From assembly GCA_044892505.1 (NCBI GenBank), contig CM097882.1:381424001-381488000 (forward strand): DNA of 64,000 nt, in the 5' to 3' direction. The translations under genes and the position numbers were made by a program. The stretch is from Schmidtea nova. Lineage: Eukaryota. Of this stretch, positions 25,401-59,790 are shown in pieces (the stretch's first letter is position 1; each line of letters begins with the position of its first letter). The notes under the pieces were generated by a model that saw nothing but the letters and a program-made list of their open reading frames with translations, had not been told where the DNA came from and made no database searches.

Positions 25401-27220
25401 NNNNNNNNNNNNNNNNNNNNNNNNNNNNNNNNNNNNNNNNNNNNNNNNNNNNNNNNNNNNNNNNNNNNNNNNNNNNNNNNNNNNNNNNNNNNNNNTGATT
25501 ATTTTTACTATTATCATTATTATTAATCATAATCATTAATTCATCCCGACGGGTGAAACGCGGGAAACCCCGCGTTTCATCCGGTACCCTTAGCAAAGCA
25601 AAAACTCTGCAATGTTTGAATGTTTTTTTTATCAACTTCCACGTCGGATCCTTCAATCCGGATTATTTCATATAATTTTGAAAATAATTTGTTTCTTCTC
25701 GTTACACACACACATATATATATGTGTGTGTGTGCTTTAACAGAGATGGCCAAACTTCATGTCACTACGAGCCACATCAAATAATCTCAAAGACAGGAGA
25801 GCCGCGATCACTTTTTCGAACGAATCATAAACAATGATTTTTATCTAAGATTTTTAAACTAAGACCCGATGGTTTTCTTTTTTTATCAATAAATGCTGAA
25901 TCTTTTTCCAAACTACTCTTAAAATTTCTATTTCATTCTTCTTGCTTTTCGAATCCATAATAAAGGATTTTATTTCTATTTACATCAGTTAAGGAGTCTT
26001 TTAACTACAGAAATATCAATTTCAACCAACTTTGACCTTACGTTTTACCTACAGAGAAATTCAACATCTGATTGGCTATCCTACAAAATTGATAATATTG
26101 AAATTATTCATTTATTTTACGGATATGTAATGTCAAATAAGTTTTATCCTCTTTTGAAAATTTAATTAATTTTCAACTGTCGTCACGAATATTGATTTCT
26201 TTATTATTCATATATATATATATATGGAAGTAATCGTTAAATGTATTCGGTTTATTTCAACAATTTTTACTAAATTACCCTTTTTATGTTTCACCGCCAA
26301 AAATACATATCAATAATGAAGCTGACATAGGTTGAAGGATATTTGTGTAGATGGACATTTACTGATGAAATTGTAAGATATAAAGATAACATATGCCATG
26401 TTTTCTGTAAATTCTTAATATACTAATCCCAAAGAATGGACACTAATAATATCATCATTATATTCCGGTTTCCCTTTTGATCTTTTTTTCTTTCAGTAAT
26501 TTTTCTAAGACTAGATCAAAACAATTTTTCTTATTTCGTAAACGATATTTCGGCACAGCCCTTATCAAGTGTGTACATTGATTGAAATTCATAATATTTC
26601 CGTGACACACAAAATTTAAAAAGCAGTGCTATGAAATTAAATGTTTAGTTTACATTTTAATCGACAGTAGAAATATTGAAAAATTTTCGTTAGATTCCTG
26701 AGGCTATATCAAACAGTAAAGATCTCAGAGTGTCAGTTGATAAAAAGCATATTAGTGTCTGTGCTAATATTCAAAACGAGGTTCAATCTGTAATCGATAA
26801 GGATTTAAGCTGGGAAGTCAAGAAGAACGAAGTGTTTTGGTCATATGATCGAAAAGAGAGTAAAATTTTAATATCCGTAGAAAAAGTCCAAGAACGTTGG
26901 TGGGAAGCGCTTTTTATTGGAGAATCTACAATTAATACTCGTAAAATCGACTGCAGTCGCCCAATGTCCGATTTGGATGATGAAGCTCAAGCAAAAATTC
27001 ACAAATTAATGTACGATAATCGCCAGAAACAGTTGGGTTTGCCTACCAGTGATGAGCAGGTTATATCGTTATCTTTTTGTTTTTCTGGTATATTCAGCTT
27101 ATATTGACGATTTAGGGAATGAATAATGCTCTAAAGAAGGCGTGGAATCTCGAAGGCTCTCCTTTCAAAGGAAAAGAATTCGACCTTTCAAATATTGATA
27201 TTGTTGATAAAGGAAATTGA
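22432..27220 (+). CDS. NUDCD3: NudC domain-containing protein 3-like. Exons 22432-22541, 22587-22668, 22712-22760, 22809-22929, 22970-23066, 26694-27059, 27116-27220
   Basis: Phase-consistent GT-AG introns. Motifs FLDVLFGFLRRRTD, MGFFPGKAE, SYNG..GDNYTWSQT, ERWWEALF.GE, LKKAWNLEGSPFKG match the NudC/NudCD3 family. Confidence 0.88.
24440..24590 (+). mobile_element. Unclassified element copy E4 (degenerate 3' region only)
   Basis: GTTCACCTTC and GGTAACTGCGGGGAAAATAT resemble E1 GCTCACCTGC and GGTAACAGCGGGGTGAATAT. Confidence 0.35.
24710..24870. repeat. Degenerate head-to-head palindrome of the Penelope tail with damaged hammerheads (in NudCD3 intron 5)
   Basis: tttaaacaagtacccaatatttcggcaaagccttt followed by aatacacacttgataaagtctgcctaaatattgtgtacttatttaaa. 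Confidence 0.75.
25187..25495. other. Assembly gap (N run)
   Basis: Run of n. Confidence 1.
26542..26574 (-). ncRNA. Hammerhead variant copy (U3:A8, AUC triplet)
   Basis: Reverse strand ACACAC-TTGATAA-G-GGC tgt GCC-GAAA-TAT-C-GT. Confidence 0.5.
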
Positions 27221-33999: not shown

Positions 34000-36015
34000 A
34001 CGGGATTGGGGGAATGAATTTATAAATACAATGCCCACAATTGGCAACAAATTATTATGTTTTGGCAGCAAAGCTCACCTTCTCACTAAATTCTCGTTTC
34101 ACCATGTGTATTACCAACATAGCTTAGTAAAGAGTAACTATGGGTAGACGAATAAGGAATTTTTTACATTTCCATGACGGTGCATGGTAGGGTGGCCCTT
34201 AAAAATTAAAGTTTGAAATCATCTTCTGGCTCCCCTTCAATGTATTCCACTTACAGAAATAAAATTATGTACAAAAAATCTTGCGAATTGGACAATATTA
34301 GAGGTGGCTCTCTAGCTTTGAAGTTTTACCAAATCCGTTAAATTTAAATAAAGTTGTGAAACTTGTTTCGCGTGTTGTATAATATGTTGTATTGTAGCTA
34401 TGCATGTATTAACAATAACTTATAAAGTTAGACACCTACTTCTGCAGTCGTTCAATGTTTGGAAGAGTGGGGTGTCGAAAATCAGGTCGCTGCTCTTTGT
34501 TTTGATACGACCGCATCTAATACTGGTCATCGTTCAGGAGCATGTTCTCTGATCGAGCACAAACTAAACAAAGATCTTCTATTCCTGGCCTGTCGTCACC
34601 ACGTTATGGAGCTAATTGTCGTGGCAGTATTTGATAAGACTTCGATTGGCACTTCAACAGGACCAGACTTTCTCATATTCAAGCGGTTCCTCGATCAATG
34701 GTCATTCATAGACCGTGACAGCTTTCAGGTTGCTTCATCAGACCCATCTGTTGAGTTACTAGTTGCTCCATATCGTTCTGATATCCTGATTTTTGAAAGA
34801 ACATATTTGCAAGCTGAACAGCCAAGAGATGACTACAGAGAATTCCTTGAGCTTGCAGTCATATTTCTTGGCGCTGTTCCTGAACGTGGAATTCACTTTC
34901 AAATGCCTGGCGCAACGCATAGGGCACGATGGATGGCAAAAGTCCTCTATTCCATCAAAATGTGGCTTTTTCGCAGTCAGTTCAAGATGACTGCTTCAGA
35001 AGAGCGTGGTATTTGTGATGTCGCCATCTTTTCCGTTATCATCCACCTCAAAGCCTGGATGACTGCACCACTGGCTGTTGAAGCACCTCTGAATGACTTC
35101 AAGCTTATGGGACAACTTCTGAACTAACCTCATGTGGCTATTTCTGCTGCAACCAGCAAGAAGCTTGGTCTACATTTGTGGTATCTATCCGAGGAGCTCA
35201 TTGGTCTGGCTCTGTTTGACTCCAGATTATCGCATGACTCAAAGAGACTGATGATTGCCGCGATGAACGAAGAAGCTCCGGATCATCCATCGAAGCGACC
35301 CAGCATAAAGTCTGATGCATTCCTGGGAAAACATGGTTTGGAGCAGTTCTGTACATCAAACTCCAAGAAACTGTTCTAGATCTGCCCGAAGAACTGGTCG
35401 ACAAGGATCCATCAGACTGGGAACAGGATGAGTCGTACACACGAGCACTGGGCATTGTCAAGAGCTTGGCGGTTTCAGGATTACAACAAGAAATTGACCG
35501 AAAATGAAGATCAACTCCAGTTTCTTCTTTAAATTGTGAATGAACACAGGCGACAATTCCCTGACTGTACCAAACGAATCCTAGCGAATTGTACTAGTAC
35601 TGGTGAACAATTGGACACTGTGAAATAACAGTAATATGGATGAACAGTTGACAGTCTGGCAGAGACATAATTCTTAACATTTGCACTTTGCAGTTTGAGT
35701 TATTTCTGAATAAGTGATATTACATTAAACTGAACTTTTACAAGCTGTTGTGTGTGACTGTGTGTGGAATAAATGTGAACTAAACAAGAAAACTGTGGCA
35801 ATTTAACATTGCAAGCTTCAAATAGTGGTACTTACAAAACTTAAACACTCGAGGGCCACCTCTAAAAAAATTGACCAATCGTAATGATTTTTTGCACAAT
35901 TCATTATTTCTATATTTGGCACAGATTGGATTGGTGCCAGAGTTGAAATTATGACTTCCATTTTTTTGCTATGTGCTAAGGGCCACCCTAGTGCACGGGT
36001 TACAGTAATCCCTAG
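34000..36015 (+). mobile_element. Unclassified element copy E3 (3' region), interrupted by a hAT insertion
   Basis: GCTCACCT, TTACC-AA-CATAG...CTATG-GGTAG hairpin. After removing the hAT it continues GGGTTACAGTAATCCCTAG|T. Confidence 0.55.
34188..35990 (+). mobile_element. Internally deleted hAT (hATm-like) element with transposase C-terminal fragment (about 34440-35590)
   Basis: 14-bp TIR TAGGGTGGCCCTTA/TAAGGGCCACCCTA; 8-bp TSD GTGCATGG/GTGCACGG; CFDTTASNTG and LACRHH motifs; stops and frameshifts; subterminal inverted AGAGGTGGC. Confidence 0.9.
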
Positions 36016-36580
36016 TAATAATAATTTTTAACGACTTATACGCCAAATAACTAATTTTAGTTTTTGCCAAACCATTGTTTGTTTTTCACCATCTACGACT
36101 CTACATAACATAATAATTAATTTGATTTTAAATTGACTACGATAAAGCATAACTTCATTTACAAATGCAATTCAAAAATTAATTTTGTGAAAAAGTACAA
36201 TCTTAGAATTTAGTACATTTTATTGAATAGAAAAAGTTTTGCATATTTCATAATAATAAATTTAGACATTAATTGTATTTGTCACTTTTGCTAAATATTT
36301 AAAAAACAAACATTTAATTAAAAAAATCAATGAATATATGATTTTTTATCTTTTGGTAACCTTGTAATTTAATTACACGACCTTAACTTATAATCTTATA
36401 TTTACTTCATTTATTAAGTGTTAATTTTAAAATTCACTAACAATTTGTTGTTATTAACTTTGTTTAAATATATAGTTCACAACTTTTTCAAGAATTACTT
36501 ATTTTTTTCTTAGTATAAATTAATATAAATTAAATTAATTTTTATTGTGTATTATTAAAAAAAAATCAATTTACGCCAGG

Positions 36581-39500
36581 ATGGAGAAGCGTACAAACAT
36601 TCCAGCAGATATTCAAGACATGATTTTAGCAATTCCTCGTGTATTTTATGATCCAACAGAGGGAGCAATTCTTAACTTCTTGGTAATTTCCCATGAATAT
36701 TTTGACACACATTTCTATCATTTTCATTATCAACAGATCCGTTATAATTATCTCAGTGAGCAGCAATTAGTTGAGAAATCTGAATTTGATTTCCAAATGG
36801 TCAGATCTTCATTAAATAAATTGCGGAAAGATAAATTAGTCGACATGAAAATGCAAGTTTCCACCGATGAAAATGGAAAATCAATAAATACTTCTTATTT
36901 TTTTATAAATTTTAAAGTAAAAATTTTTCTAATTTAAAATTAAACTAGTTTTTCTCATTTGATAATTTCATCTAAACTCAGCAAGCCTTGAACTGCTTCA
37001 TGTACAGACTGGAAAGCAGTTATAAGAAACTAGAAGAAGCTCAAAGACAAAATATTAGCAGTGGTGATTATTGTTGCACGGAATGCGGTCAAACTTATTG
37101 CGATTTGGATATTATGTCGCTGTTCAATTTTGAACGGGAATGCATTCTATGTGGTATATGTAATGGTGTCGTTGAGTCAATTGAGGACAAAGAGAAACGT
37201 CACAATGCTCGCGAGGAAATTGCCAGATTTAACACAAAAGTAATTAATTAATTGATTTTTTATTTTTATTATACATCTTTTTGAGATTATGAAATTATAA
37301 ATTTAATTAATAAATTGATAACCAATATAATATCACGTGCTTTGTGTTATTTTAATAACATCAAAGTGCTATCATTAATTTTTTATATAAAAAAACCTAA
37401 ATATGAAACCTTTTGACGCCAAACAGTGCATTTGATTCTCAATAAACAACTGAAACATTATCCGCCAATATCTTGTTTTCATTAAATCCATATTCAATGA
37501 CAATATTGATTCTCTTCACAATTGCTTATAATTCTGCTAAGTTGATGTGCAGTGTATCATCCTTCTTTCTAATCCAAGCTGCCCCTTTATATTATCTTAC
37601 CATCGACTTCTAAATATACTCTGTTATCATAATAATAATAACTCACATCTCATCATAAATTCACCGGTTTCTTTTTATCGGCATAACAAACACAACAACA
37701 CAAGTCATACAATTTCGCCATATCAATCATTTTCTTTAATTTCTTTCTAAAATTGAACTTCAGTAGTCTGTTTTCGCTTCTGAGCTTTGATGTTATTCAA
37801 AGCTCAAGTCGAAAATTGTAACAAATCTGATATTCTCTTTGTTGAAATACAAAATTTAACAACAGGCACCATCAAGTGTATTTGGCGTGAAAAAAACATT
37901 TATGAATGGATTTCGAATCCAGTCGTATTTTTCCATATTATAATATAATTTGTTATTATAATTCAGTTCAGGTGCATGTTCAGGTGACCTAATAAAATTT
38001 CGCGGCCCATGGATTACTTAACATTACTTTAACATCTACCTTAAAACCGTGATATAATGCTTTTATAATCTATTCGCAACTTGAATTGATCTGGAGGCCG
38101 GTTAAGAAATTTGCACTGTTGTGGGGAGCCGGACAAACAATAATGATACATTTTCGACATTACTTGAATTTAAACCAGACAAAATTTAAGGTTAAATAAA
38201 TTGAAATCGTTTTACCGCAATATTGTTTAAAATATAAAGATGTATTCTGTAATTTTGCATATTAAACATATTTTAGTTATTCAGTAAATCCAGTTTCATT
38301 ACCTAAAATTAGAAATAAAGTACTAATCAATGACCTTTTGTCACGGTATGTTCATAAGTCTTTTTTGCATTATGAAGTTGATTTGACAAGCTAATAGAAA
38401 CCATGTGTTATTTTGATATTCCGACTAATCTCAGTGAAACTATTACATGACCAGGTACCGGATAAAATCAATCAATCGGCCAAAACTTGATCATGCTTGA
38501 TATTAATATTCAAAATAAAAACACCTCTATACACAGCGTCCATTTCCCGACTGTTTATGTAATCCCGGGATCGGGAAATTTAAACCATTCGATCTTAGGA
38601 ATCTCATGATTATCTTTTTAATAATGGTTTTTATAATCAATTAGCTATTTTAACAAAAATAAAATAATGAATTCATTAAAACATAAAATACAATTTAATA
38701 ATAACAATAACAAAAAGCTTAACAATCAATAATTTTTTCCACATTAAATAAAATATGTTATTAAGAAACAAAAAATCTTTAAAACTTGCTCGTTTTTTAA
38801 AGAAAAACGATAAAACAATTGAGAATACTCTTTCTGATTCCGTTAGATAAACTCTAGGAAAAATAAATTGCAAGTTAATAACCGGGTGTTATTCTCCTTT
38901 TTAGTTAACGGGTTACCTCCGGAAAGGAATAACTCTCAAGGAATAACACAATGATTAGTGAGATTTCTAAATTCCATATCAATAGTTCCCACTAGATATA
39001 AACACCCATCTTAAGTCTGTATACCTGCTCAAGGTAATATATGGAAATACCCTGAAAAGCTATTTAGTTTCTCATCACTAATCGGATCTGATCGAAATGA
39101 GACCCTCATTTAATTTGACAACCTCACACTGGCTACGCTATAGGAATCCGTGTCAAATTTTCAGTTTTCCGTTCAAGAAGTGTAATCATACGGCCCGCAT
39201 TTTTAATTACTATGGCGTGCTGAATATTTGCATAATCAGTTACTGAATTCCTTTCACCAGTTACCATAATAGTCATAATGCCGATTAAGATTATACGACC
39301 CATGAATACTGGTTTCTTTCGATTCTAGCCAACTAATTCATTTAAAGATAAATGTATGCGAGGATACCATTAATTAGTTCTAATATATCTCATGAGCATA
39401 TAATCATTGATTTGGGAGCCAGATTAACAATTATGTGACATCGGTTCAGATATCAATAGATCGCACTATATTAAGTTTAATATATAACCGCTGATTTTAA

Positions 39501-42500
39501 GCATATCACTTCTGTTCACGCCTATCCGGTTTGTCACAGTGCCAGATACCTGGTCAAATGCTGGAGATGATTCATGCTTGCTTTGAACTAGAATACCACT
39601 CGCTCTCCAGATTGTAACAAATTTTTATGATGGTTTTAAGTCCGTTGGAATCGACGCTGGCATTTACCTGGCATTTACTTTACCTTATACTTTGACTCCG
39701 TCTTAAACAGCCTCTTTTCTAGCCTATAAAATTGATTACAATAAATAATGACTAATTTTCAGATTATGTAAAGATTGAAATGATTTTAAAATATAATTTA
39801 CACAAACGAACAAATGTTTTTGTAAAAGAAAAATTTGTTTATGCAGAAAACATGATAAATAGAATAATTAATTTACATATTTATTTTATCAAACAAGTTG
39901 TACGATTCATATATGAATCGCTGCGCACTAGTAATTCATGTAATAAAGGATAAGGAATTACAATTTATGAAATGCAGCAAAATAATTTTTATCTTTGTTG
40001 AAACAAAAATATGTGTTACATTTTTCACAATCTACAATAGTTCGTGACTCACAATATCTGACTCTGGTTTCATTTCATTTTTGATTTTTTTTATCTAATC
40101 CAACATCTTTCGTAGGTAGGGGAGTAACACAAGGGGTTTTTCTCTTTGCTTCAATTCTTTTTGTAAATCTGAAGGTCTACTTCGTTTTATTTTATTATAA
40201 GAGCCAATATTGCACAACGTAGAAGCTAATTCGAGTAGAAAATCTATAAGTTTCATAGTTGGCAATCCTTTGTCGCATATTCGGTATAACAACCAAATAT
40301 TTATTATTGTAATGCTGAGAAGATAATAACATAATCTTGTATACCATTTGCGTAATCTCATTCTTGATCAATACTTCCCAATAAAACTGTCCGGTAAATC
40401 AACCAATCCCATATGTTTGTTTTATTGTTTACAACAGCTGAAAAGACACTTATATTCCTTCCTTCCTTTCTATCATATGCTTGAACAAACGAAGATAACA
40501 ATATTACTGTCTTTTTTGTTCTTCCAACAAACACTAGTTATATGATTCCCATTAAAATTTGTAAGAAACTCCTTACTTTCTACTTTCTACATTCCATTTT
40601 TTATATTTAAGTTCTGTTGGCATCTTGTATAGCGGAATTCTATTCCTTTTATAGTCTCTAGAGAATGTATCCCATTTTTCAAGATAATTTATCAATAAAA
40701 TGGAGCTATAATAATTGCCAAAGTTCTATTTATAATAATTAATAATAACATCTCAAGCTAAACGTACAATCACATTAGAACTTGATCCTATAATAGACTC
40801 ACATGGCAATCGTTTACTATGGTAATTTTGGTGTTTCAGTATGCATTTCGTATTTATAACAATACCTTTTAAATTCCGATAATTAAAAAAATTTAATATC
40901 CCAATATGTTTGGTTTTTGGGGCATGTATTGATTCAAATGATACCGATTTCTTGTGAAACAAATTTGCACATCAACTAAGAGTATTTTTGCCATAGGATC
41001 TGACACAAAATTCGATGCAAGTGAATCTAATACCAGTCTCAAGTTTTGAAGTTTATCATTAGATACCAAAGAATTATCATTAAAATTTAAATTCGAACAG
41101 ATTTTTTCAAAAGTTTTTTTATTCAAAGTATCTAGAAAAATGTCAAGTCCAATTTACTCCCATACATTCTCATATTAGGCATATAATCAACTGATGATAC
41201 AATAAATATATCGAGATACTTCATAAATTCGATTTTTGAAAAACTGAATGCTTTAGAGTTTTAGAAATGATGTACCTTCTACTTTTCTCAAGAATTTTAA
41301 CCATAAGTTCATCATTGAAAAAAATTTGAAAAATTGTAATGGTGTTTGCTAGGTTAGAATTCTCTCAAGTAATGTTCTTGTCTTAGAAACTTTTATAAAT
41401 ACAGAATATGACGCAGATTGTTGTTCAAGTGTTTTTTCTGTAATTGTCTTCTATTGAATTTTGTGACAAACACTTTTGGTGAAATTTTTCTACACCTTTC
41501 TTGTCCAATTCGATATCTTCAAATTCATTTTGCAATTAGAACAATAAAATTTAATCATATAAAAGAACAAAAAAAATTGTACAAATCAACAAAATGCTAA
41601 AATGTAAATATGATGTAGTTGATTCATTTGTGCACCAGGATACACTGTAGGGTTAAACGTTAATTATTGGTTCGTCTAGCTAATTCATTTCTATTCACAT
41701 ATTTATAATAATAATGATTCAAATAAGAAAAATAAGTACATTCCAACACCAACAAATCAATTTAATACAAAATCTACATTATATGCTAAAATTTAGAGAA
41801 AACTATAACTTAAGAATAAAATACGTTAAAAAATAAAAATAACAAATATCATTTCTACTGGGAACTGAAAATTCTTGCTTCATTTGTTTTATTTTGGCTC
41901 ATTAACTAAATCAGATTAAATAATTTTTACCGCGGAAAATAAACACTACTAAAATTTGCGTCACTTGCACTGCTGTGACAGTCAATGGTGGATCTTGAAT
42001 GATTTGTGGATATTGCTGTTTTAATATCTATTTTGAAAAACGGCCGATTTCATTTATCTTTAACAGAGCATTGTAAGGAGTTTGAGTTGACAGTGTTCAT
42101 GATTTCTCAACTTTTTACTTTTTTCGAGAAGAGAAAATATTACATTGATTTCTCGAGAAATAAAAAATGTTTTCTAAATTTTTTTAAAAATTATCAAAAC
42201 CTATACTCAACTACATTCAGTTATGCTCACAAATACTCAAATACGCTCAACTGCACTCAACTATGGAAACTTCTCTCAACTATGCTAAAATACGCTCACA
42301 TATATTCAAATACGCTCAACTTCTCAACTACGCTAAATTACTCTCAACTATACTCAAATAAGCTCAACTACATTCACCTATACTCAACCCTACTCAACTA
42401 CTCGAAACTATGCTTAAATACGCTCACCTATCCTCAAATACGCTCAAACTGTGCTCAACTACGCTCAAACTGTGTTCAACTACTCTCTACTATGCTAATA

Positions 42501-44349
42501 TACGCTCACCTATACTTAACCCTACTCAACTACTCACAACTATGCTTAACTATGCTCACCTATAATCCAATACGCTCAAACTACGCTTAACTACTCGCAA
42601 CTATACTCAAATACACTCAACTGTGCTAAAATACGCTCAAATATGCTTAACTACATTCACTTATACTCAACCCTGCTCAACTACTCGCAACTATGCTTAA
42701 ATACACTTATCTATAATCAAATACGCTCAAACTACGCTCAACTACTCGCAACTATCCTCAAATACGCTCAAACTGTGCTCAACTACTCTCTACTATGCTA
42801 ATATACGCTCACCTATACTCAACTGCACTCAAATATGCTCAACTACACTCACTTATACTCAACTACACTCACCTATACTCAACTGGACTCAAATATGCTC
42901 AACTACGCTCACCTATACTCAAATATGCTCAACTACACTCACCTATACTCAAATATGCTCAACTACACTCACCTATACTCAAATATGCTCAACTACACTC
43001 ACCTATACTCAACTGCACTCAAATATGCTCAACTACACTCACCTATACTCAAATATGCTCAACTACACTCACCTATACTCAACTGGGCTCAAATATGCTC
43101 AACTACGCTCACCTATACTCAAATATGCTCAACTACACTCACCTATACTCAAATATGCTCAACTACACTCACCTATACTCAACTGCACTCAAATATGGTC
43201 AACTACACTCACCTATACTCAAATATGCTCAACTACACTCACCTATACTCAACTGGACTCAGATATGCTCAACTACGCTCACATATACTCAACTGCACTC
43301 AAATATGCTCAACTACACTCACCTATACTCAACTGCACTCAAATATGCTCAACTACGCTCACCTATACTCAACTGCACTCAAATATGCTCAACTACACTC
43401 ACCTATACTTAACTGCACTCAAATATGCTCAACTACACTCACCTATACTCAACTGCACTCAAATATGCTCAACTACACACACTTATACTCAACTGCAATC
43501 AAATATGCTCAACTACGCTCACATATACTCAACTGCACTCAAATATGCTCAACTACGCTCACATATACTCAAATTCGCTCAACTGTGCTCAAATACGCTC
43601 AACTATGATCTTTTGAACATAAACTACCTTCAAAACGGCTTTGTAGCCCATTATTATAACAAATCTGCTGATGCGTAGGAGGCAATCTCTCAAATATTTG
43701 CATAACAGCAGTACCATCACTTAATGTGTATATTATATCTTGAAGAGATAGACCAAATTGGCCTTATTTCTCAATAATTAATATCAAAACTTTGCTACGG
43801 GACAGTTTCCATCTCTCAATACCAACCCAAAATTATCTAAATATATTTCATTGTAATATAAATGTACATCCACGTATCTTTTTTTCATACTAGTCCATTC
43901 ATCAATAGATTTAATGAATTTTTTCTGATTTGTTTTAAAATTTTGTATTTTCTGTACTTGATCTGGGTTTTTCTGTTTACAAAATTCTAACATTGATTTC
44001 TTTATATCTGTAGGATTTTGTGGAAGAATAAACCTATTCAATTTCATACTTTGTCTAATGAATTCACTTTTGACAATTCTGTAAAATCCAACCAAATTTA
44101 CTCATTGTTTTATTATCACCACGTTCACATATGTTGCTCGCTCCATATTGAGCACCATATTGTTCTATGTACACTTTCAAGGTGACTATGAAGTCCAATA
44201 CTTGCAGATCCTTTGATGGAGATAGACTTACCACATATACTACAGTTAGCTAATTATTTGTCGTTATTTCCAAGGATCTTGATGAATTATTATCGTTTTT
44301 CTGGGTTCTTTACAATAAAAACGTTTGACAGCACAAAAATAATTAATTT

Positions 44350-44391
<42 letters not shown>

Positions 44392-47300
44392 CTTTTTATC
44401 GGGGTTGCAACTTTCGTTGCCGATACCCCTAAAACAAAAGTTAATAAAACAAAATAAGGAATAAACATTTATTCAAAAGATATCTTCTAGGTTAAATGCT
44501 TATTGGTTAAAATGTTTCTTGGTTAAAAATTCGAATTCTTCTGCGTGTTCGATTATAATTCTACTTGTTATTTAATTTTCAAAAAAACTCCTTTTCAATC
44601 TAACTTGTTAATTAAAACAACCTTTCTATATATCTCAATAATTTAATTTAATATACATATGTATATATAATATATAAAATTATTTAAAATATAAATAATT
44701 ATATATATATGACGCAGGCACTACACTTTTCAATATTAAAAAATATGTAAGAATATATTTACGGATTTTTCATTATTATATTATATTAAATGTGTTATAT
44801 TATTATATTAAATCTCTTTGGATGAAACAGAAACATCTATAATTCCCAGTAAAATATATTAAAATGAAATGTACATAGCGTTACCATACTGACAACATTT
44901 AAAGAGTGCATGGGGGTGTGAAAATTCAAAAATCACTCGAAAATAAGTCGCTTCTTTTTTAATTAAAAAATAAAAGATAAAATTACAAAAATTACAAAAA
45001 AAAAATTACAAATACAATTTCAAATTGTATGCAAAATAACATTACATAATATATAAATACTTATTCAAACTGATATTTAGCTTTATTTCTGATTTCTAAT
45101 AAAAGCTCTTTATTATTTAAGCAATAATTATAAAATTCCGAACAGTCAAAATTTTTATAATTAAATTGCTCCATGAAAGTATTGTTTACCGATTCAGGTA
45201 AAAGTCTGTTTCTTTCATCGGTCCACCGTGCCTTCATTGGGCTGAACACCCTCAATACGTTTGCGTTATGTGCTGGTATTGCAAAATAAAAATTGCATAT
45301 TTTTAAAAACTCTCCCGAAGTGTTATTGTTTTGACTTTTAAAATTACTTGTCCATTTATCCGCACTGTGTTGGTTTGAAAATTCTTCACAAGGTATTTTT
45401 TTATCTAAAAAATGATTTAACCTTAAAGATTGATCAAACAATAATGATTCCATTTATATCTATTCTTTTTTATAAATATTCCACTGCATCTTGGATTTCG
45501 TGCCACTCTGGCTTACTTTTTAGCAACATCCATTTAAAGACTTTAAATTAATCCAAAGAGTAAGTCCACATCTTTAAATTTTCTAATCCTCTTTCATATA
45601 CGTGAATTAATTCATTTTATATTACATGGCTTCTCGGTTGATCGTTATTAGAGCGAATGGGATAAATTCATTATCTCTTCTTTGTATTAATATTTCTTCT
45701 ATGGAAAATAATATTTCGCTTATTTCCATTAAGGAATTTTTCTTGCTCCATACTTTCTATTTTTGAATGGAAAACATACATTAAAGAATAAATGAACCAT
45801 AAATAGCACTCATTAAGTGGTTTTTCAAAAAAAGTTTTGATTATTATGGGAGGCGGAATATGGGACAAAAAAAAGATTTAAGCGCTGGATACAGTTGCAA
45901 AATTCTATTCACTGCAGGAAATAAAGACAGCCATCGCGTTTTGGAGTGGAACAACAACTTCTTATATGCAATATCAACGAAATCACAAAAATCTTTTAAT
46001 GCCTCTGTGTATATAGAAAAATTGATTATATATTTTTAAAATTATTGATTCCACGTCTAGAGGTAAGCCATCTAATGCATGCTGCACGCAATTATTTAAA
46101 ATATGTAGAGGACAACCCACTCCAATGATATCCCTCCTTAACCCGTTTTGTAAACGACAAAAACATTGTTCTGGCTTCTTCTTTCGACACCACCTGTTTG
46201 ATCCAAGCCAGTTAATCAAGGCTTGAGAGAAGAAATAAGCAAGATCCAATAAAGAAACTTTAACTGGCGGACTACTTCCGAAGAAAAACCCAATCATATA
46301 TACCATAATATCATTACATAAATTCATAGAAACTGTCATTGAAAACCACATAATTCCATTGATTAAACTGTCAATCATAAAATACGAAGACGCGCCTATT
46401 ATTAGCAGTGTCACATGAGTCCATCCAAACAATGTAAATTGTTGCAGATAATGCTTCTTCACCAAGACGAGAGCGAACCACCTAATGGCACAACTCAATA
46501 TATAGAACGATATAAACTGATAGTAAGAAAATTCTTTTGCCATTAATCTACGTATATTTCCATTTTTATAAACTTTGAAGCAATCTTCAAGTAGATTTTC
46601 GTCAGATACACGCGAAAACATTAACACAATTGTTTTATTTAAGTCACGAAGATAATGAGGACATTCATTTGAATTGAAATAATTCCCATGGCATCTACGA
46701 ATAAAACTTGCGGTGGCTTTTTTCATATTGTCATAATCCGTCCCGATATCGGTTTCATTTAATAAATCATTTCCCATTGAACCATAACACATCATATTGA
46801 CATCAATTTTGTCCATCTTTCAAATTTAAATACCACCAAGTTCAAATTTCCAATAATTCAGCCAATTTTAAAAATTATCAAAAACTAAAAAATCCAAATA
46901 GTTTGACAAAACAAACTCCAAATCAATGCGCACACAGGCGCGTGTATCAAAAATATCAACGCGCACACAGACGCGACTTAATTAAATAACCGCAAGAGCG
47001 CACACGACGCGACAATAATAAAAAAGCAATGCGCACACATATGCGTACAACCCCACACACCCAGAAATCACCACCACCAAAATTTGTGTTACAATTTCCC
47101 CTGTGAAAGTAACACACTTCAGCTAAATTATTTTTTGGAGTGTAGCTTTAATTACATCACAAATTGTCTCACATTTCTCATTTTGTACCGATTTCATTTC
47201 CAATAAACGATGTTGAATGCCAAATTCCTTGTCAAAAATTTGAATTAATATAGGGAACAATTTTAATGCACCTATATGAGAAATGTATTCATCATGTATT

Positions 47301-50040
47301 TTTTTAAGTGTCATCTTTAATGAGTTAGGTGCCATAACATTATTTACTATTGCTTCTGTTTTTGTTCTGGCAGAAGAAATCTTTGAAGCTACTTCAGAGT
47401 CGGCAAACAACCTGCGATATAAATTTATTGAACAGTCGCAACTATGGTGATCTTTTGCAGTGTGAAAAGCCAGCGTAGCTTCTGCAGCTAAATTTTTTTC
47501 TTCTGTCTTACTATTTTTCTGAACAAAAATTAAATCTCATTTTGCATTAGTACTGGACGATTGGAATCGTGATCTGTGTTTTGCAGATTGTATATGTTGC
47601 TCCAAATCACATTTCCTCTTATTTGAAATCGAAACTATAATCTGACAAATGTCACAAAAAGCTTCATGCTCAAGTTTAGATTTTTTGAACCTCGGATACT
47701 TTTTACCCAAATCATCATTGAATTTACATTTGCTACGTGACATTCTTAATGGCTAAAAATTTCTAATAATTAAATTTCTAAAAAGAAATAAGATTATATT
47801 TACCAAATTGTTCAAATTGTCAAAATTGAAAAATAAACTTTTTACTGAAAAGTTTATTTTTAAATTTGGACAATTTGAACAATTTGGTAAATATATATTT
47901 TTATTTCTTTTTATAAATTTAATTATTAGAAATTTTTTAATAAAAGTTTTATTAAAAAATAAAAATTATCTAGGTAGTTTTTTCAATAGTTTTAAATTAA
48001 GAGTAAATACTACAAAGTAAATTAGAATGAAATACTTTAATTGAAAATATAAGTAGTAGTTTCACATGTATATGGCTAATATTGAATAAACATATTTAAT
48101 TTCTAAAAATGTTTAATTGTTAATCTTTTTTTCGGTTTTCGACTGTTTTCCTTTAATTTCAAATCAGTTGATGTAGAAATTACAATAACTATTTGACAGT
48201 TAACTCCAAGCAATAAATATTTTTAAAAAAAAAGTGATTTTGCCGCTTAACTTTAAGGTTTGGTCAACGCAGTTTGGTGTTGCAAATGCTGTTTTTCAAA
48301 TATTTTTTTAAAGAGTACTTTTGTGGAAAAATAGTACTGTACTCTTTAAAAGAGTACAGTTGGTATCCCTGAATGCACCGAAGAATTGTAAACATAAAAA
48401 ATGGGAAAAAACATTAACTTTTTTCAAGAAATAATACATTTTTTCGAGAATTGCGAAACGTGAAAATTTAATGCACCCAGTAATTTTTCATTGCTTCTTG
48501 TCAATTCTCATGTTACATCAAATATTTCTAATTGTTATTATTGGCTGTCTTTTGATCGTTTTCCAGTTTAAAATTCGACTAACTTCTTATTTTTTGATTC
48601 AAAAAATATTTTCCCAATAGCAGTAGTTTATTAAATGTCGTTTTGCTCGTTTTTAACAACGGTTTGAGTATTTGATTTTTAAAACTTTGGACTTTGGATA
48701 GTGGAGGGATTAAGAATCTCCTCGCTTGTTAAAAGAGTAACAACACGCTCAGATAATGCTTCTACTTCGATGGTTTGAATACATTCAATATCGACCCTAT
48801 ATATAGTATGAGTTCTTCATTAAAAATGAGTCATTTGTAAATCACTTTTGATACTTTTTAGTATAAAAATCGCCACAGCACTAGCTATACTATATTACCA
48901 TTTTTCACAATTAACGCGTAAGAGACATTTCCTACGGCTGAAACTTGTTGTATTTTTGATTTATCTTCATCAATTTTCTGTAAAATTCTTTTAATATATT
49001 TATTTGCCATTTGGCCTTTCTATACTGACTCTCAATCATTTCTTAAATCTTCTTTCGATAATTTTACTTTCAGCAAATTTTCCATCATTTCATATTTTTT
49101 TTCTTCTTCATTATCAAGACAATGCTTTTGGAAGAATGTTGTCAAATTTGACATTGTTAGCTTGTGCTTCAGAATTTTCTGAACACCTTTCTCAATTTTA
49201 CTGATGTAAGTTTCTGCATCATCTTCCCTCTTTCGATAATTTAGCAAATATTCCAAATCCCCAGCTAAATCCTGGTTTGCTTCGAATGCTAATCTAAGCC
49301 TTTTCGCATAATCTTCCTCATCTGGAATCTTGTCATATTTGTTGCGGCAATTTTCGTCCAAATAAGCTCGAACAATTACCTTTCTTTGACTATTGTCTAA
49401 CTGAATAATTGAAAAATATGATTCAATTTTCTCAATAAACTCTTCCAAATCGTCTCCAATTGAATAGATTTTCGGCTGTGGGGAATCCATAATAATTCTT
49501 GAGTTGAAAGCGTGGTCGCCATGTAAAGAATAAGAATAACTTTTGAAGTTCTTAAATTTTATTTAAGAAATCTTGGTACTATTTATAGTACCCGGTGTGC
49601 CGACACCAGCACAATCAGCAATAGCTTCTTGGGAAATAATAAACAATGATGTCATCTGAGGACCCAGACAATCAAGCATAATCAATCACACATGAAGGCA
49701 TTACTCAATATATAATAGGGGTTAGGAAAATCAAATATCCCATTATAATTACATCACAATATGGCAGTGCAGTTTTAAAATAACGAGAGCTCTCTTCCAT
49801 GACCGTTTTTCATTATTTTGCAAGATATTGTTTCAAGCCGATGATGACTTAATTTTTTCGAAGCCGAAAGCGGGACTTGTTTCAGTTGAAGGCTATTGTT
49901 TTCTAATTCATCCGATTCTTAATAATCTTCTCCATTGTCATCAAAATACGAACTCGCCAAATTTGTTTCCTTTTCTAAATTCGAATATGTTTATTTATTC
50001 AGAAATTAAACTACTTTCAGCTAATAGCGCTATTAGTTAA

Positions 50041-59000: not shown

Positions 59001-59790
59001 ATAACTAAGCAATCCAAAAAATAGTTCCAAAAAATTTTAACCAACACTGCCTTTTTGTATTAAATTAAAAATTATTTTCTGGTCAACTTTCGCTGCGATA
59101 TCCGATAATGCATTAAATTACATTTCAGACTGTAAATGACTCGGTTGATAATATAAAATCAAATAATGTAAACATGATGAAAGGGGATGAGATATCAGTT
59201 AATCTCAATTCCAATGCCACTTGGGGTGATACATATAATTCTGCAGACAAAGAAGCTAAAGAAAATCCTGCATGGATCAGTTCAAATGTTGCAAATAACT
59301 TTATTTCCAATATTAACCAACCAGAAAATAATTTAGATAAAAACTCATCTGTTCAAGGTTGTTAAATAGTTTTTACTGAAATTGAATAAATTAAATTTCC
59401 ACCAGATGATAATATTACATTGACTATGGCTCCTGGTCGGGTTCCCGGAGCCGTAACAACGGTTAATTCTTCGATGCCTGTCGCAGATATTATGAGTGTC
59501 CTTTTAGCCAATGAATATTGTGTAGAAAATTCGATAAAGTTCTATGAAAATTTAAGTAATTAAGTTTATAAAAGAAAATGTTTATAAAAGAAAATCATTT
59601 AGAAAAAGATCTCCACTATAAACCTGTGCAATCTAATTTCTCTAAAGTATCTGTCAACGGTAACAGTTATGATATCTGGAATGTTACAGAGGAAATGTTT
59701 GAACGCATGACCAAAGAAGAAATCATCCAATTTAAATCATTAGGGCGACGCATTCATGATTATTGCTACGATTCGATGTATATTTGTTAA
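36581..59790 (+). CDS. GTF2E1: General transcription factor IIE subunit alpha. Exons 36581-36682, 36737-36916, 36982-37239, 53205-53294, 59129-59357, 59406-59521, 59575-59790
   Basis: Winged helix (LNKLRKDKLV..YFFINFK), zinc ribbon (CTEC..C..C), ARFN, then IRNPFVSLF..., KEAKENPAWI, DIMSVLLANE and the C-terminal VSVNG..MTKEE motif, all in TFIIE-alpha order. All junctions are GT-AG and phase-consistent. The last junction is the least certain. Confidence 0.82.
39955..41652 (-). mobile_element. piggyBac transposase remnant
   Basis: LNFNDN..DKL, QYMPQKP, KWYTRL..INIWLLY and Cys-rich tail CEKC..FC..FH; end ...GGG|TTAA at 41652; many stops. Confidence 0.8.
42205..43605. repeat. Satellite of 10-bp monomers (aaatatgctc, aactacactc, acctatactc, aactgcactc) in 30/40-bp higher-order units
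   Basis: Exact decamer periodicity from about 42800 to 43570; more degenerate on the left. Confidence 0.95.
44876..48371 (-). mobile_element. hAT transposon (degenerate) with a captured host-gene fragment
   Basis: Zinc-finger ORF (AFCDIC..DLEQHIQSAKH), ARTKTEAIV, GCPLHILNNC and PAHNANV.RVFS..W..ERNRL dimerisation motif. Ends CAGGGATACCA / TAGCGTTACCA-like. Flanks AATGTACA/AATGCACC (6/8). Confidence 0.8.
46253..46816 (-). pseudogene. Intronless fragment of CDP-diacylglycerol synthase (phosphatidate cytidylyltransferase, CDS1/CDS2-like)
   Basis: YQFISF..FALVLVKKHYLQQFTLFGWTHVTLLII..LINGIMWF..VSMNLCNDIMVYMIGFFFGSSPPVKVS matches the conserved CDS segment LVKKHY..F..FGWTHVTLLI..CND..AY.FGFFFG.TP..KLS. 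It breaks off before KKTWEG. Confidence 0.85.
49032..49753 (-). mobile_element. Gypsy 5' end: LTR (49522-49753), PBS (49512-49521) and truncated gag (49032-49490)
   Basis: TGTAA...TTACA LTR with TATAAA and AATAAA, followed directly by TGGCGACCAC and a gag-like ORF (DDLEEFIEKIESYF..RAYL). Confidence 0.75.
52090..52930 (-). mobile_element. Highly degenerate mariner transposase remnant
   Basis: KADLHQNKVIM..KGIVY.EL..TIN followed by a decayed catalytic and C-terminal region. Confidence 0.55.
54578..55029. mobile_element. hAT (Charlie/Buster-type) MITE
   Basis: CAGGGGTAGCCAAC ... GTTGATTACCTCTG; flanks ATTTACAC/ATTTATAT with central TA; GC-rich subterminal gcgggcc/ggcccg motifs. Confidence 0.7.
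55270..55800 (-). mobile_element. mariner remnant
   Basis: RKLFSRF, NIVTDDETPF and HPPYSPDLAP motifs. Confidence 0.75.
56699..58517 (-). mobile_element. mariner (DD34D) element with both TIRs and a disrupted transposase
   Basis: About 45-bp TIRs (TA|CGTGGTGTGCC.AATAAGTCAT..GCCTAACAAAGAAAAACAA), HTH ORF, IVTMDET, HDNAP-34aa-SDFYLF. Internal about 180-bp tandem duplication at 56800-57140. Confidence 0.9.

Follow-up and report, generated by a model that had tools for sequence, protein, structure and literature searches.

The 277-codon open reading frame (ORF) at 45983-46816, on the minus strand of a 64,000-nucleotide stretch of the genome of Schmidtea nova (the window, in which all positions are counted), joins a piece related to CDP-diacylglycerol synthase (CDS; phosphatidate cytidylyltransferase, in eukaryotes CDS1/CDS2, Pfam PF01148 CTP_transf_1) to the transposase sequence of a hAT element. 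The hAT element landed in antisense orientation in an intron of the gene for TFIIE-alpha (GTF2E1) and died, and an 877-bp piece of foreign DNA then entered its transposase gene. We consider it probable, although far from settled, that this nested insertion was derived from RNA and that the chimeric ORF is fortuitous; most likely the ORF is not a gene at all. A preliminary description of the ORF is partly confirmed: most of its anatomy was correct, but it overstated how far the CDS-like part extends.

The insert and its carrier, a dead hAT transposase gene

The ORF is present exactly as had been described, with an ATG start two codons past an in-frame stop, and it ranks second by length among the ORFs of the window outside a tandem-repeat array. 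Because the GC content of the window is only 29%, an open frame of 277 codons is far from a chance event. Homology to hAT transposases stops at 47072 and resumes at 46194, and the insert (46195-47071, minus strand) lies between the hAT codons NFGG, at about 47083-47072, and VERRSQNNVF, which begin at 46188. It is flanked on both sides by a perfect 7-bp direct repeat, GGTGGTG (7 of 7 bp), read on the minus strand with its upstream copy at 47072-47078 and its downstream copy at 46188-46194, which resembles a target-site duplication. Related hAT proteins read ...NTNFGG followed by V/I-x-R at this point, and if the insert and one copy of the repeat are removed the hAT frame is restored as NFGGVERRSQNNVF, which matches relatives such as NTNFGGVNRRGVNNIF and has the same length as in the relatives. 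The insertion is thus a clean one, which deleted no hAT sequence and left a duplication like that of a target site. Its measured length and the colinearity of hAT on both sides bear out the insert of about 0.87 kb that had been proposed to split the transposase. The insert is absent from all of the hAT relatives of about 600 amino acids. No terminal inverted repeats (TIRs) were found at the ends of the insert, no poly(A) at either end, no matches to hAT proteins inside it and no second copy of any of its parts, head or tail, within the window. A DNA transposon and a solo long terminal repeat were rejected as identities of the insert, which possesses neither TIRs nor TG..CA ends having a matching duplication.

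Read on the minus strand, nucleotides 1-255 of the insert are non-coding and contain a 33-bp tandem repeat in 3.4 copies (46924-47039, no strand assigned; core GCGCACACA; Tandem Repeats Finder), nucleotides 256-528 are ORF codons 1-91, nucleotides 529-819 are codons 92-188 and nucleotides 820-877 form a tail read as codons 189-207. The 58-nt tail (46195-46252, minus strand) is not A-rich, has no CDS or hAT match in any frame and nothing similar to it was found elsewhere in the window. Codon 208 begins at the first base beyond the insert, and 13 codons of hAT sequence are then read out of frame (208-220), until a hAT frameshift near 46158 switches the reading, at about codon 221, to the original frame of the transposase. 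This frame, which includes the GVGCPLHILNN motif of the hAT core, is kept for about 57 codons, and the next hAT frameshift, near 46000, leads the ORF to its stop at 45985-45983. The frameshift near 46158 belongs to the decay of the hAT gene and is unrelated to the insert; the tail of the chimeric ORF is incidental. Two features of the preliminary description agree with this layout, since the sequence GGVERRSQNNVF is indeed hAT read in a different frame and the part CRLQ..GVGCPLHILNNC is hAT in the frame of the ORF. The stretch of about 30 out-of-frame hAT codons is correct for 13 of them, while the 19 others (189-207) are the tail of the insert.

The carrier is a near full-length hAT transposase gene at 45067-47743 (minus strand), delimited by tblastn with relatives of 600-640 amino acids. 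These relatives were sought among 1.84 billion representative proteins with a stop-free piece of 137 residues just upstream of the ORF (47536-47126), which matched 467 of them, many with lengths of 596-644 residues. They are colinear with the window over amino acids 1-625 of 633 (tblastn E values from 1e-36 to 1e-40). In the 633-residue relative P0133, amino acids 1-228 correspond to 47743-47096, those from 235 onward to 46194 onward, 249-496 to 46153-45452 and 501-625 to 45438-45067. Several relatives pass the Pfam profile Dimer_Tnp_hAT (PF05699; 23.3 and 30.1 bits, cut-off 21.4), and the window's own C-terminal piece matches it weakly (16.8 bits, E 0.006). Homology along the whole length of the transposase to proteins carrying this C-terminal dimerisation domain assigns the carrier to the hAT superfamily. 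About seven frameshifts and about five in-frame stops have accumulated in some 1.8 kb, and 7 amino acids are deleted in the region of the first catalytic D, where the relatives show a TD.SN motif. The copy is dead, with neither an intact ORF nor intact catalytic residues. No convincing TIR pair of the hAT element was found around 44.7-48.6 kb, nor an 8-bp target-site duplication, and the copy is old. The search for other hAT copies, which the preliminary description had proposed, gave none within the window.

Directly upstream of the hAT start codon we observed a near-perfect hairpin of about 183 nt (47755-47937), with inner arms of 63 nt at 86% and outer arms of 45 nt at 93%. Rfam gave for it only sub-threshold matches to miRNA precursors, at 47802-47888, and over 44800-48400 no hammerhead and no spliced leader RNA. 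The hairpin could be a foldback or miniature inverted-repeat element inserted here, or the subterminal region of the hAT element. Just downstream of the transposase gene, at 43787-44253 (minus strand), there is a possible remnant of a second, different hAT-like element, recognised by eye from a BED-finger-like piece (44253-44128) and a 105-amino-acid ORF with a DEWTS motif (44101-43787); Pfam is silent on it.

The synthase fragment and its origin

The recognisable part of the insert is a fragment at 46253-46543 (minus strand), ORF codons 92-188, which corresponds to about amino acids 173-269 of the enzyme of about 460 residues and, in flatworm CDS genes, to exons 4 and 5 together with the beginning of exon 6. 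Against a profile of 447 positions, built from 120 animal CDS proteins, it aligns to positions 161-257 with an E value of 2e-39, and in BLAST and tblastn it is 53-56% identical to flatworm, nemertean and mollusc CDS, without gaps, along the central membrane helices of the enzyme. Pfam PF01148 matches residues 100-185 of the ORF with 22.5 bits, below the 24-bit cut-off, and only over profile positions 76-164 of 264; genuine CDS proteins reach 242-255 bits and match positions 2-264, and the fragment gives no whole-domain match above the gathering score. The match ends within an exon, at the equivalent of S269, and the C-terminal catalytic half is absent. Just upstream of the solid match, codons 91-96 (46529-46546, minus strand) read LMAKE, after which six residues are missing, and this gap falls exactly at the neodermatan exon 3/4 junction (LLAKE|DFLQP.). 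The likeness of LMAKE and LLAKE is anecdotal; together with the gap it could reflect an alternative acceptor in the source mRNA or be a coincidence.

Intron positions were taken from the CDS genes of four species, the annelid Capitella teleta, Macrostomum lignano, Paragonimus westermani and Schistosoma spindalis. All four genes are interrupted by introns at 210|211 and 238|239 (Paragonimus numbering), and the fragment crosses both positions uninterrupted, with exact exon-exon joins; its nucleotide matches to the exons of S. spindalis (71-82%) abut at the exon ends. The exact joining of exons at two conserved intron positions suggests that the CDS piece was derived from spliced RNA. The CDS-like part had been called intronless, and this holds at the two positions conserved in the four other species' genes. 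The 3' end of the parent mRNA is not included in the insert, the match stopping at about codon 269 of about 460.

All of the roughly 188 N-terminal codons of the ORF had been described as CDS-like, which is right for codons 92-188 (46543-46253); codons 1-91 (46544-46816, minus strand) resemble CDS no better than shuffled sequences do. These hydrophilic codons contain no stops, compared with 5 and 12 in the other two frames, and because of this they most likely derive from some coding sequence. Word search, Pfam, PDB and NCBIfam gave no relatives for them. As CDS exons 2-3 they were not reported by the CDS profile, which did report 1309 of 2000 shuffles, and nucleotides 1-543 of the insert, taken as the N-terminal part of CDS in a frameshift-aware alignment to three CDS proteins, score below shuffled DNA. 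A hAT origin of codons 1-91 was likewise rejected: BLAST matches them to an N-terminal hAT motif (E 0.011) and a hidden Markov model aligns them to the C-terminal region, which is contradictory, 18 of 2000 shuffles score as well on the model, and the hhalign probability is 0.55%.

Among 97 animal CDS enzymes, 61 columns of this region show a conservation of at least 90%, and the fragment deviates at 20 of them. Codons 92-188 thus retain 41 of 61 such columns, compared with 7 of 22 in codons 37-91. In maximum-likelihood trees, none of which includes a free-living triclad CDS, its end branch measures 4-8 changes per site, compared with a median of 0.23-0.29. The fragment falls within the set of nine flatworm rows in the first tree (SH-aLRT 99) and, when schistosome and cestode sequences are added, in the neodermatan part of the second (branch support 80/98). 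It appears to group with flatworm sequences and away from molluscs, with the placement of so long a branch being uncertain. Horizontal acquisition from a snail host was considered, as the top matches in the word search are to snails, but the trees put the fragment with flatworms, and, with the same uncertainty of placement, we see no sign of such a transfer. Extremely diverged as it is, the CDS piece did not arise by recent copying of any ordinary CDS gene, nor can it function as an enzyme.

Age of the insertion, the open frame and competing explanations

The 621 nt of the ORF that are carried by the insert contain no lesions, and about 12 disabling lesions were counted in about 1.8 kb of the surrounding hAT gene. 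With the insert and the hAT gene of equal age, the 621 nt should have gathered about four such lesions; as there are none, much of the hAT decay probably preceded the insertion. That the 7-bp duplication is perfect agrees with this order. This fits the recency suggested in the preliminary description as far as the insertion is concerned; for the CDS piece, extremely diverged, a recent copy does not apply.

In the explanation that we favour, the 877-bp piece would have been made from RNA, and its recognisable part would be a spliced internal fragment of a flatworm CDS mRNA, joined to about 540 nt of further upstream sequence and to the 58-nt tail. It may represent a reverse-transcriptase product formed by template switching or internal priming and integrated at a staggered nick. 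The ORF would then be a by-product, running from the frame of the insert through 13 codons of hAT in the wrong frame and into about 57 codons of the old transposase frame. Since its product would miss both the catalytic half of the synthase, which is C-terminal, and the hAT catalytic core, it is predicted to have no enzymatic role. Several observations weigh against this explanation. Without poly(A) and the 3' end of the parent mRNA, the insert is no textbook retrocopy made by a long interspersed nuclear element (LINE), and no source was found for about 600 of its 877 bp. Indels are absent from the 97 CDS codons and stops from codons 1-91, and in simulated neutral decay at the divergence of the CDS part the probability that all 207 codons stay open is about 0.003-0.02 (for the 97 CDS codons alone about 0.07-0.2). 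The open frame and the absence of indels suggest that the sequence evolved as coding somewhere, in the source or here. These observations are most simply reconciled if the source RNA, derived from CDS, had at the time of its copying already diverged while preserving its frame.

The same observations can be read as signs of a real lineage-specific coding sequence, now or recently kept by selection, in which the ORF or its 207 insert codons would encode a small protein having a soluble N-terminus and CDS-derived hydrophobic helices. The absence of stops and frameshifts in 277 codons of DNA with so low a GC content, the low probability of this under neutral decay, the uneven divergence of codons 92-188 and 37-91 and the position of the ATG speak for such a gene. 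Nevertheless we hold it to be improbable. The CDS part has lost a third of its invariant residues, and where the ORF stops depends on random hAT frameshifts. For the 97 CDS codons by themselves, the simulated probability of 0.07 at d = 0.18 makes an open frame only mildly improbable. A collection of 5.8 billion proteins, transcriptome assemblies among them, contains none that is identical or nearly identical to the ORF product, and the four sequencing runs containing the stretch all come from one study, with none on record as RNA. We give equally little weight to the idea that the insert is one copy of a mosaic family made by reverse transcriptase, in which a piece of host mRNA stands between a head bearing the 33-bp repeats and a short tail. 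Such a family could insert repeatedly into hAT transposase genes, and translation, whether within the source element or into a small membrane protein newly arisen here, may have kept its frame open.

Other routes by which a gene fragment could come to lie in a hAT element were also considered. The least unlikely among them, although we still regard it as doubtful, is that a double-strand break in the hAT element was mended with captured cDNA or filler, through end joining or synthesis-dependent repair, and that no endonuclease-primed retrotransposition was involved. Excision of hAT elements followed by gap repair leaves filler DNA, and both the lack of poly(A) on an internal mRNA fragment and the apparently different origins of the insert's parts agree with such capture. 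But repair of this kind usually gives deletions and one-sided microhomology; here the insertion deleted nothing of the hAT gene and a 7-bp stretch of the target stands on both sides, as expected when a staggered cut is filled after integration. Pack-hAT transduplication, in which the CDS fragment was taken up by an active hAT element and transposase acting in trans later moved the composite, is less credible still. It would explain a gene fragment inside a hAT element in the same orientation as the transposase, but a carrier with a transposase gene of near full length is not a short non-autonomous element, the piece inside it is spliced and flanked by a duplication of its own, neither TIRs of insert or carrier nor an 8-bp duplication around the carrier were found, and the window contains no further copy. 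The relatives of about 600 amino acids are moreover all without the insert, which looks younger than the hAT decay. Of the two origins named in the preliminary description, a Pack-TE-like capture or a retrocopy, the first is thus not supported, given the near full length of the transposase gene, the splicing of the piece and the failure to find TIRs or, within the window, a second copy, while the exact exon joins, the 7-bp duplication and the restorable hAT frame favour the second.

An assembly misjoin, or the possibility that this is the true CDS locus, is hardly believable. The window of 64 kb contains a single, partial, intron-free CDS piece and no other CDS exon, a match at 53154-53077 being a chance hydrophobic one; the boundaries of the insert are base-exact, the target is duplicated and the hAT frame can be restored. 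Furthermore, four sequencing runs contain 50-60% of the words of 44900-47800.

Genomic surroundings and comparison with known systems

Exons of the TFIIE-alpha gene lie on the plus strand on both sides of the minus-strand hAT element, upstream at 36539-37248 (Pfam TFIIE_alpha, E 1.4e-7, above the cut-off) and downstream at 59117-59787 (Pfam TFIIE-A_C, E 0.003, below the cut-off), and a zinc-ribbon-like exon was recognised by eye among the upstream ones. The hAT element is thus situated antisense in an intron of about 22 kb between these exons, as had been claimed. Elsewhere in the window, 42000-43700 is occupied by a C-rich tandem-repeat array (GC skew about -0.65) with several overlapping repeat ORFs of 200-325 codons on the plus strand. 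At 34432-35124 (plus strand) 231 stop-free codons contain a transposase-like motif (CFDTTASNTG ... ACRHHVMEL) and have no Pfam match, and an exon-like segment at 26694-27104 (plus strand) resembles by eye the C-terminus of the nuclear migration protein NudC, with nothing significant in Pfam.

From these results the feature can be considered an ordinary genomic fossil, one RNA-derived insertion in a dead intronic transposon, which matters little in itself and has one mildly odd property, the unbroken frame in a very diverged fragment. The locus should be annotated neither as a CDP-diacylglycerol synthase gene nor as a transposase. The base-exact empty site, given by the restorable hAT frame and the 7-bp duplication, offers a clean view of how the fragment was integrated. 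If it were true that the ORF is expressed and conserved, it would be a new gene made from a retro-copied enzyme fragment and transposase sequence.

Retroposition mediated by LINEs yields processed pseudogenes, including chimeric retrocopies that arise through template switching of the reverse transcriptase. The insert resembles a processed pseudogene or partial retrocopy in being an intron-free copy of spliced mRNA, non-functional, flanked by a short target-site duplication and nested in repeat DNA. It differs from one in having neither poly(A) nor the 3' end of the mRNA, in that only about 290 of its 877 bp can be assigned to the parent, and in being far more diverged from any known CDS than is usual, yet without a stop or an indel. 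Compared with CDS1 and CDS2 themselves, the fragment represents about one fifth of the protein, without the C-terminal catalytic half and with a third of the invariant residues replaced. Pack-TYPE transposons are non-autonomous Class II elements that have captured coding DNA between their TIRs (PMC8903248). The likeness of the present locus to these elements (Pack-MULE, Pack-CACTA, Pack-hAT) lies in a host gene fragment situated within a Class II element, here a hAT. The carrier differs in showing no TIRs or copies in the window and in keeping its transposase gene, and the fragment differs in being spliced and having its own flanking duplication; Pack-TYPE elements have been described from plants, unlike the element considered here, which is found in a flatworm.

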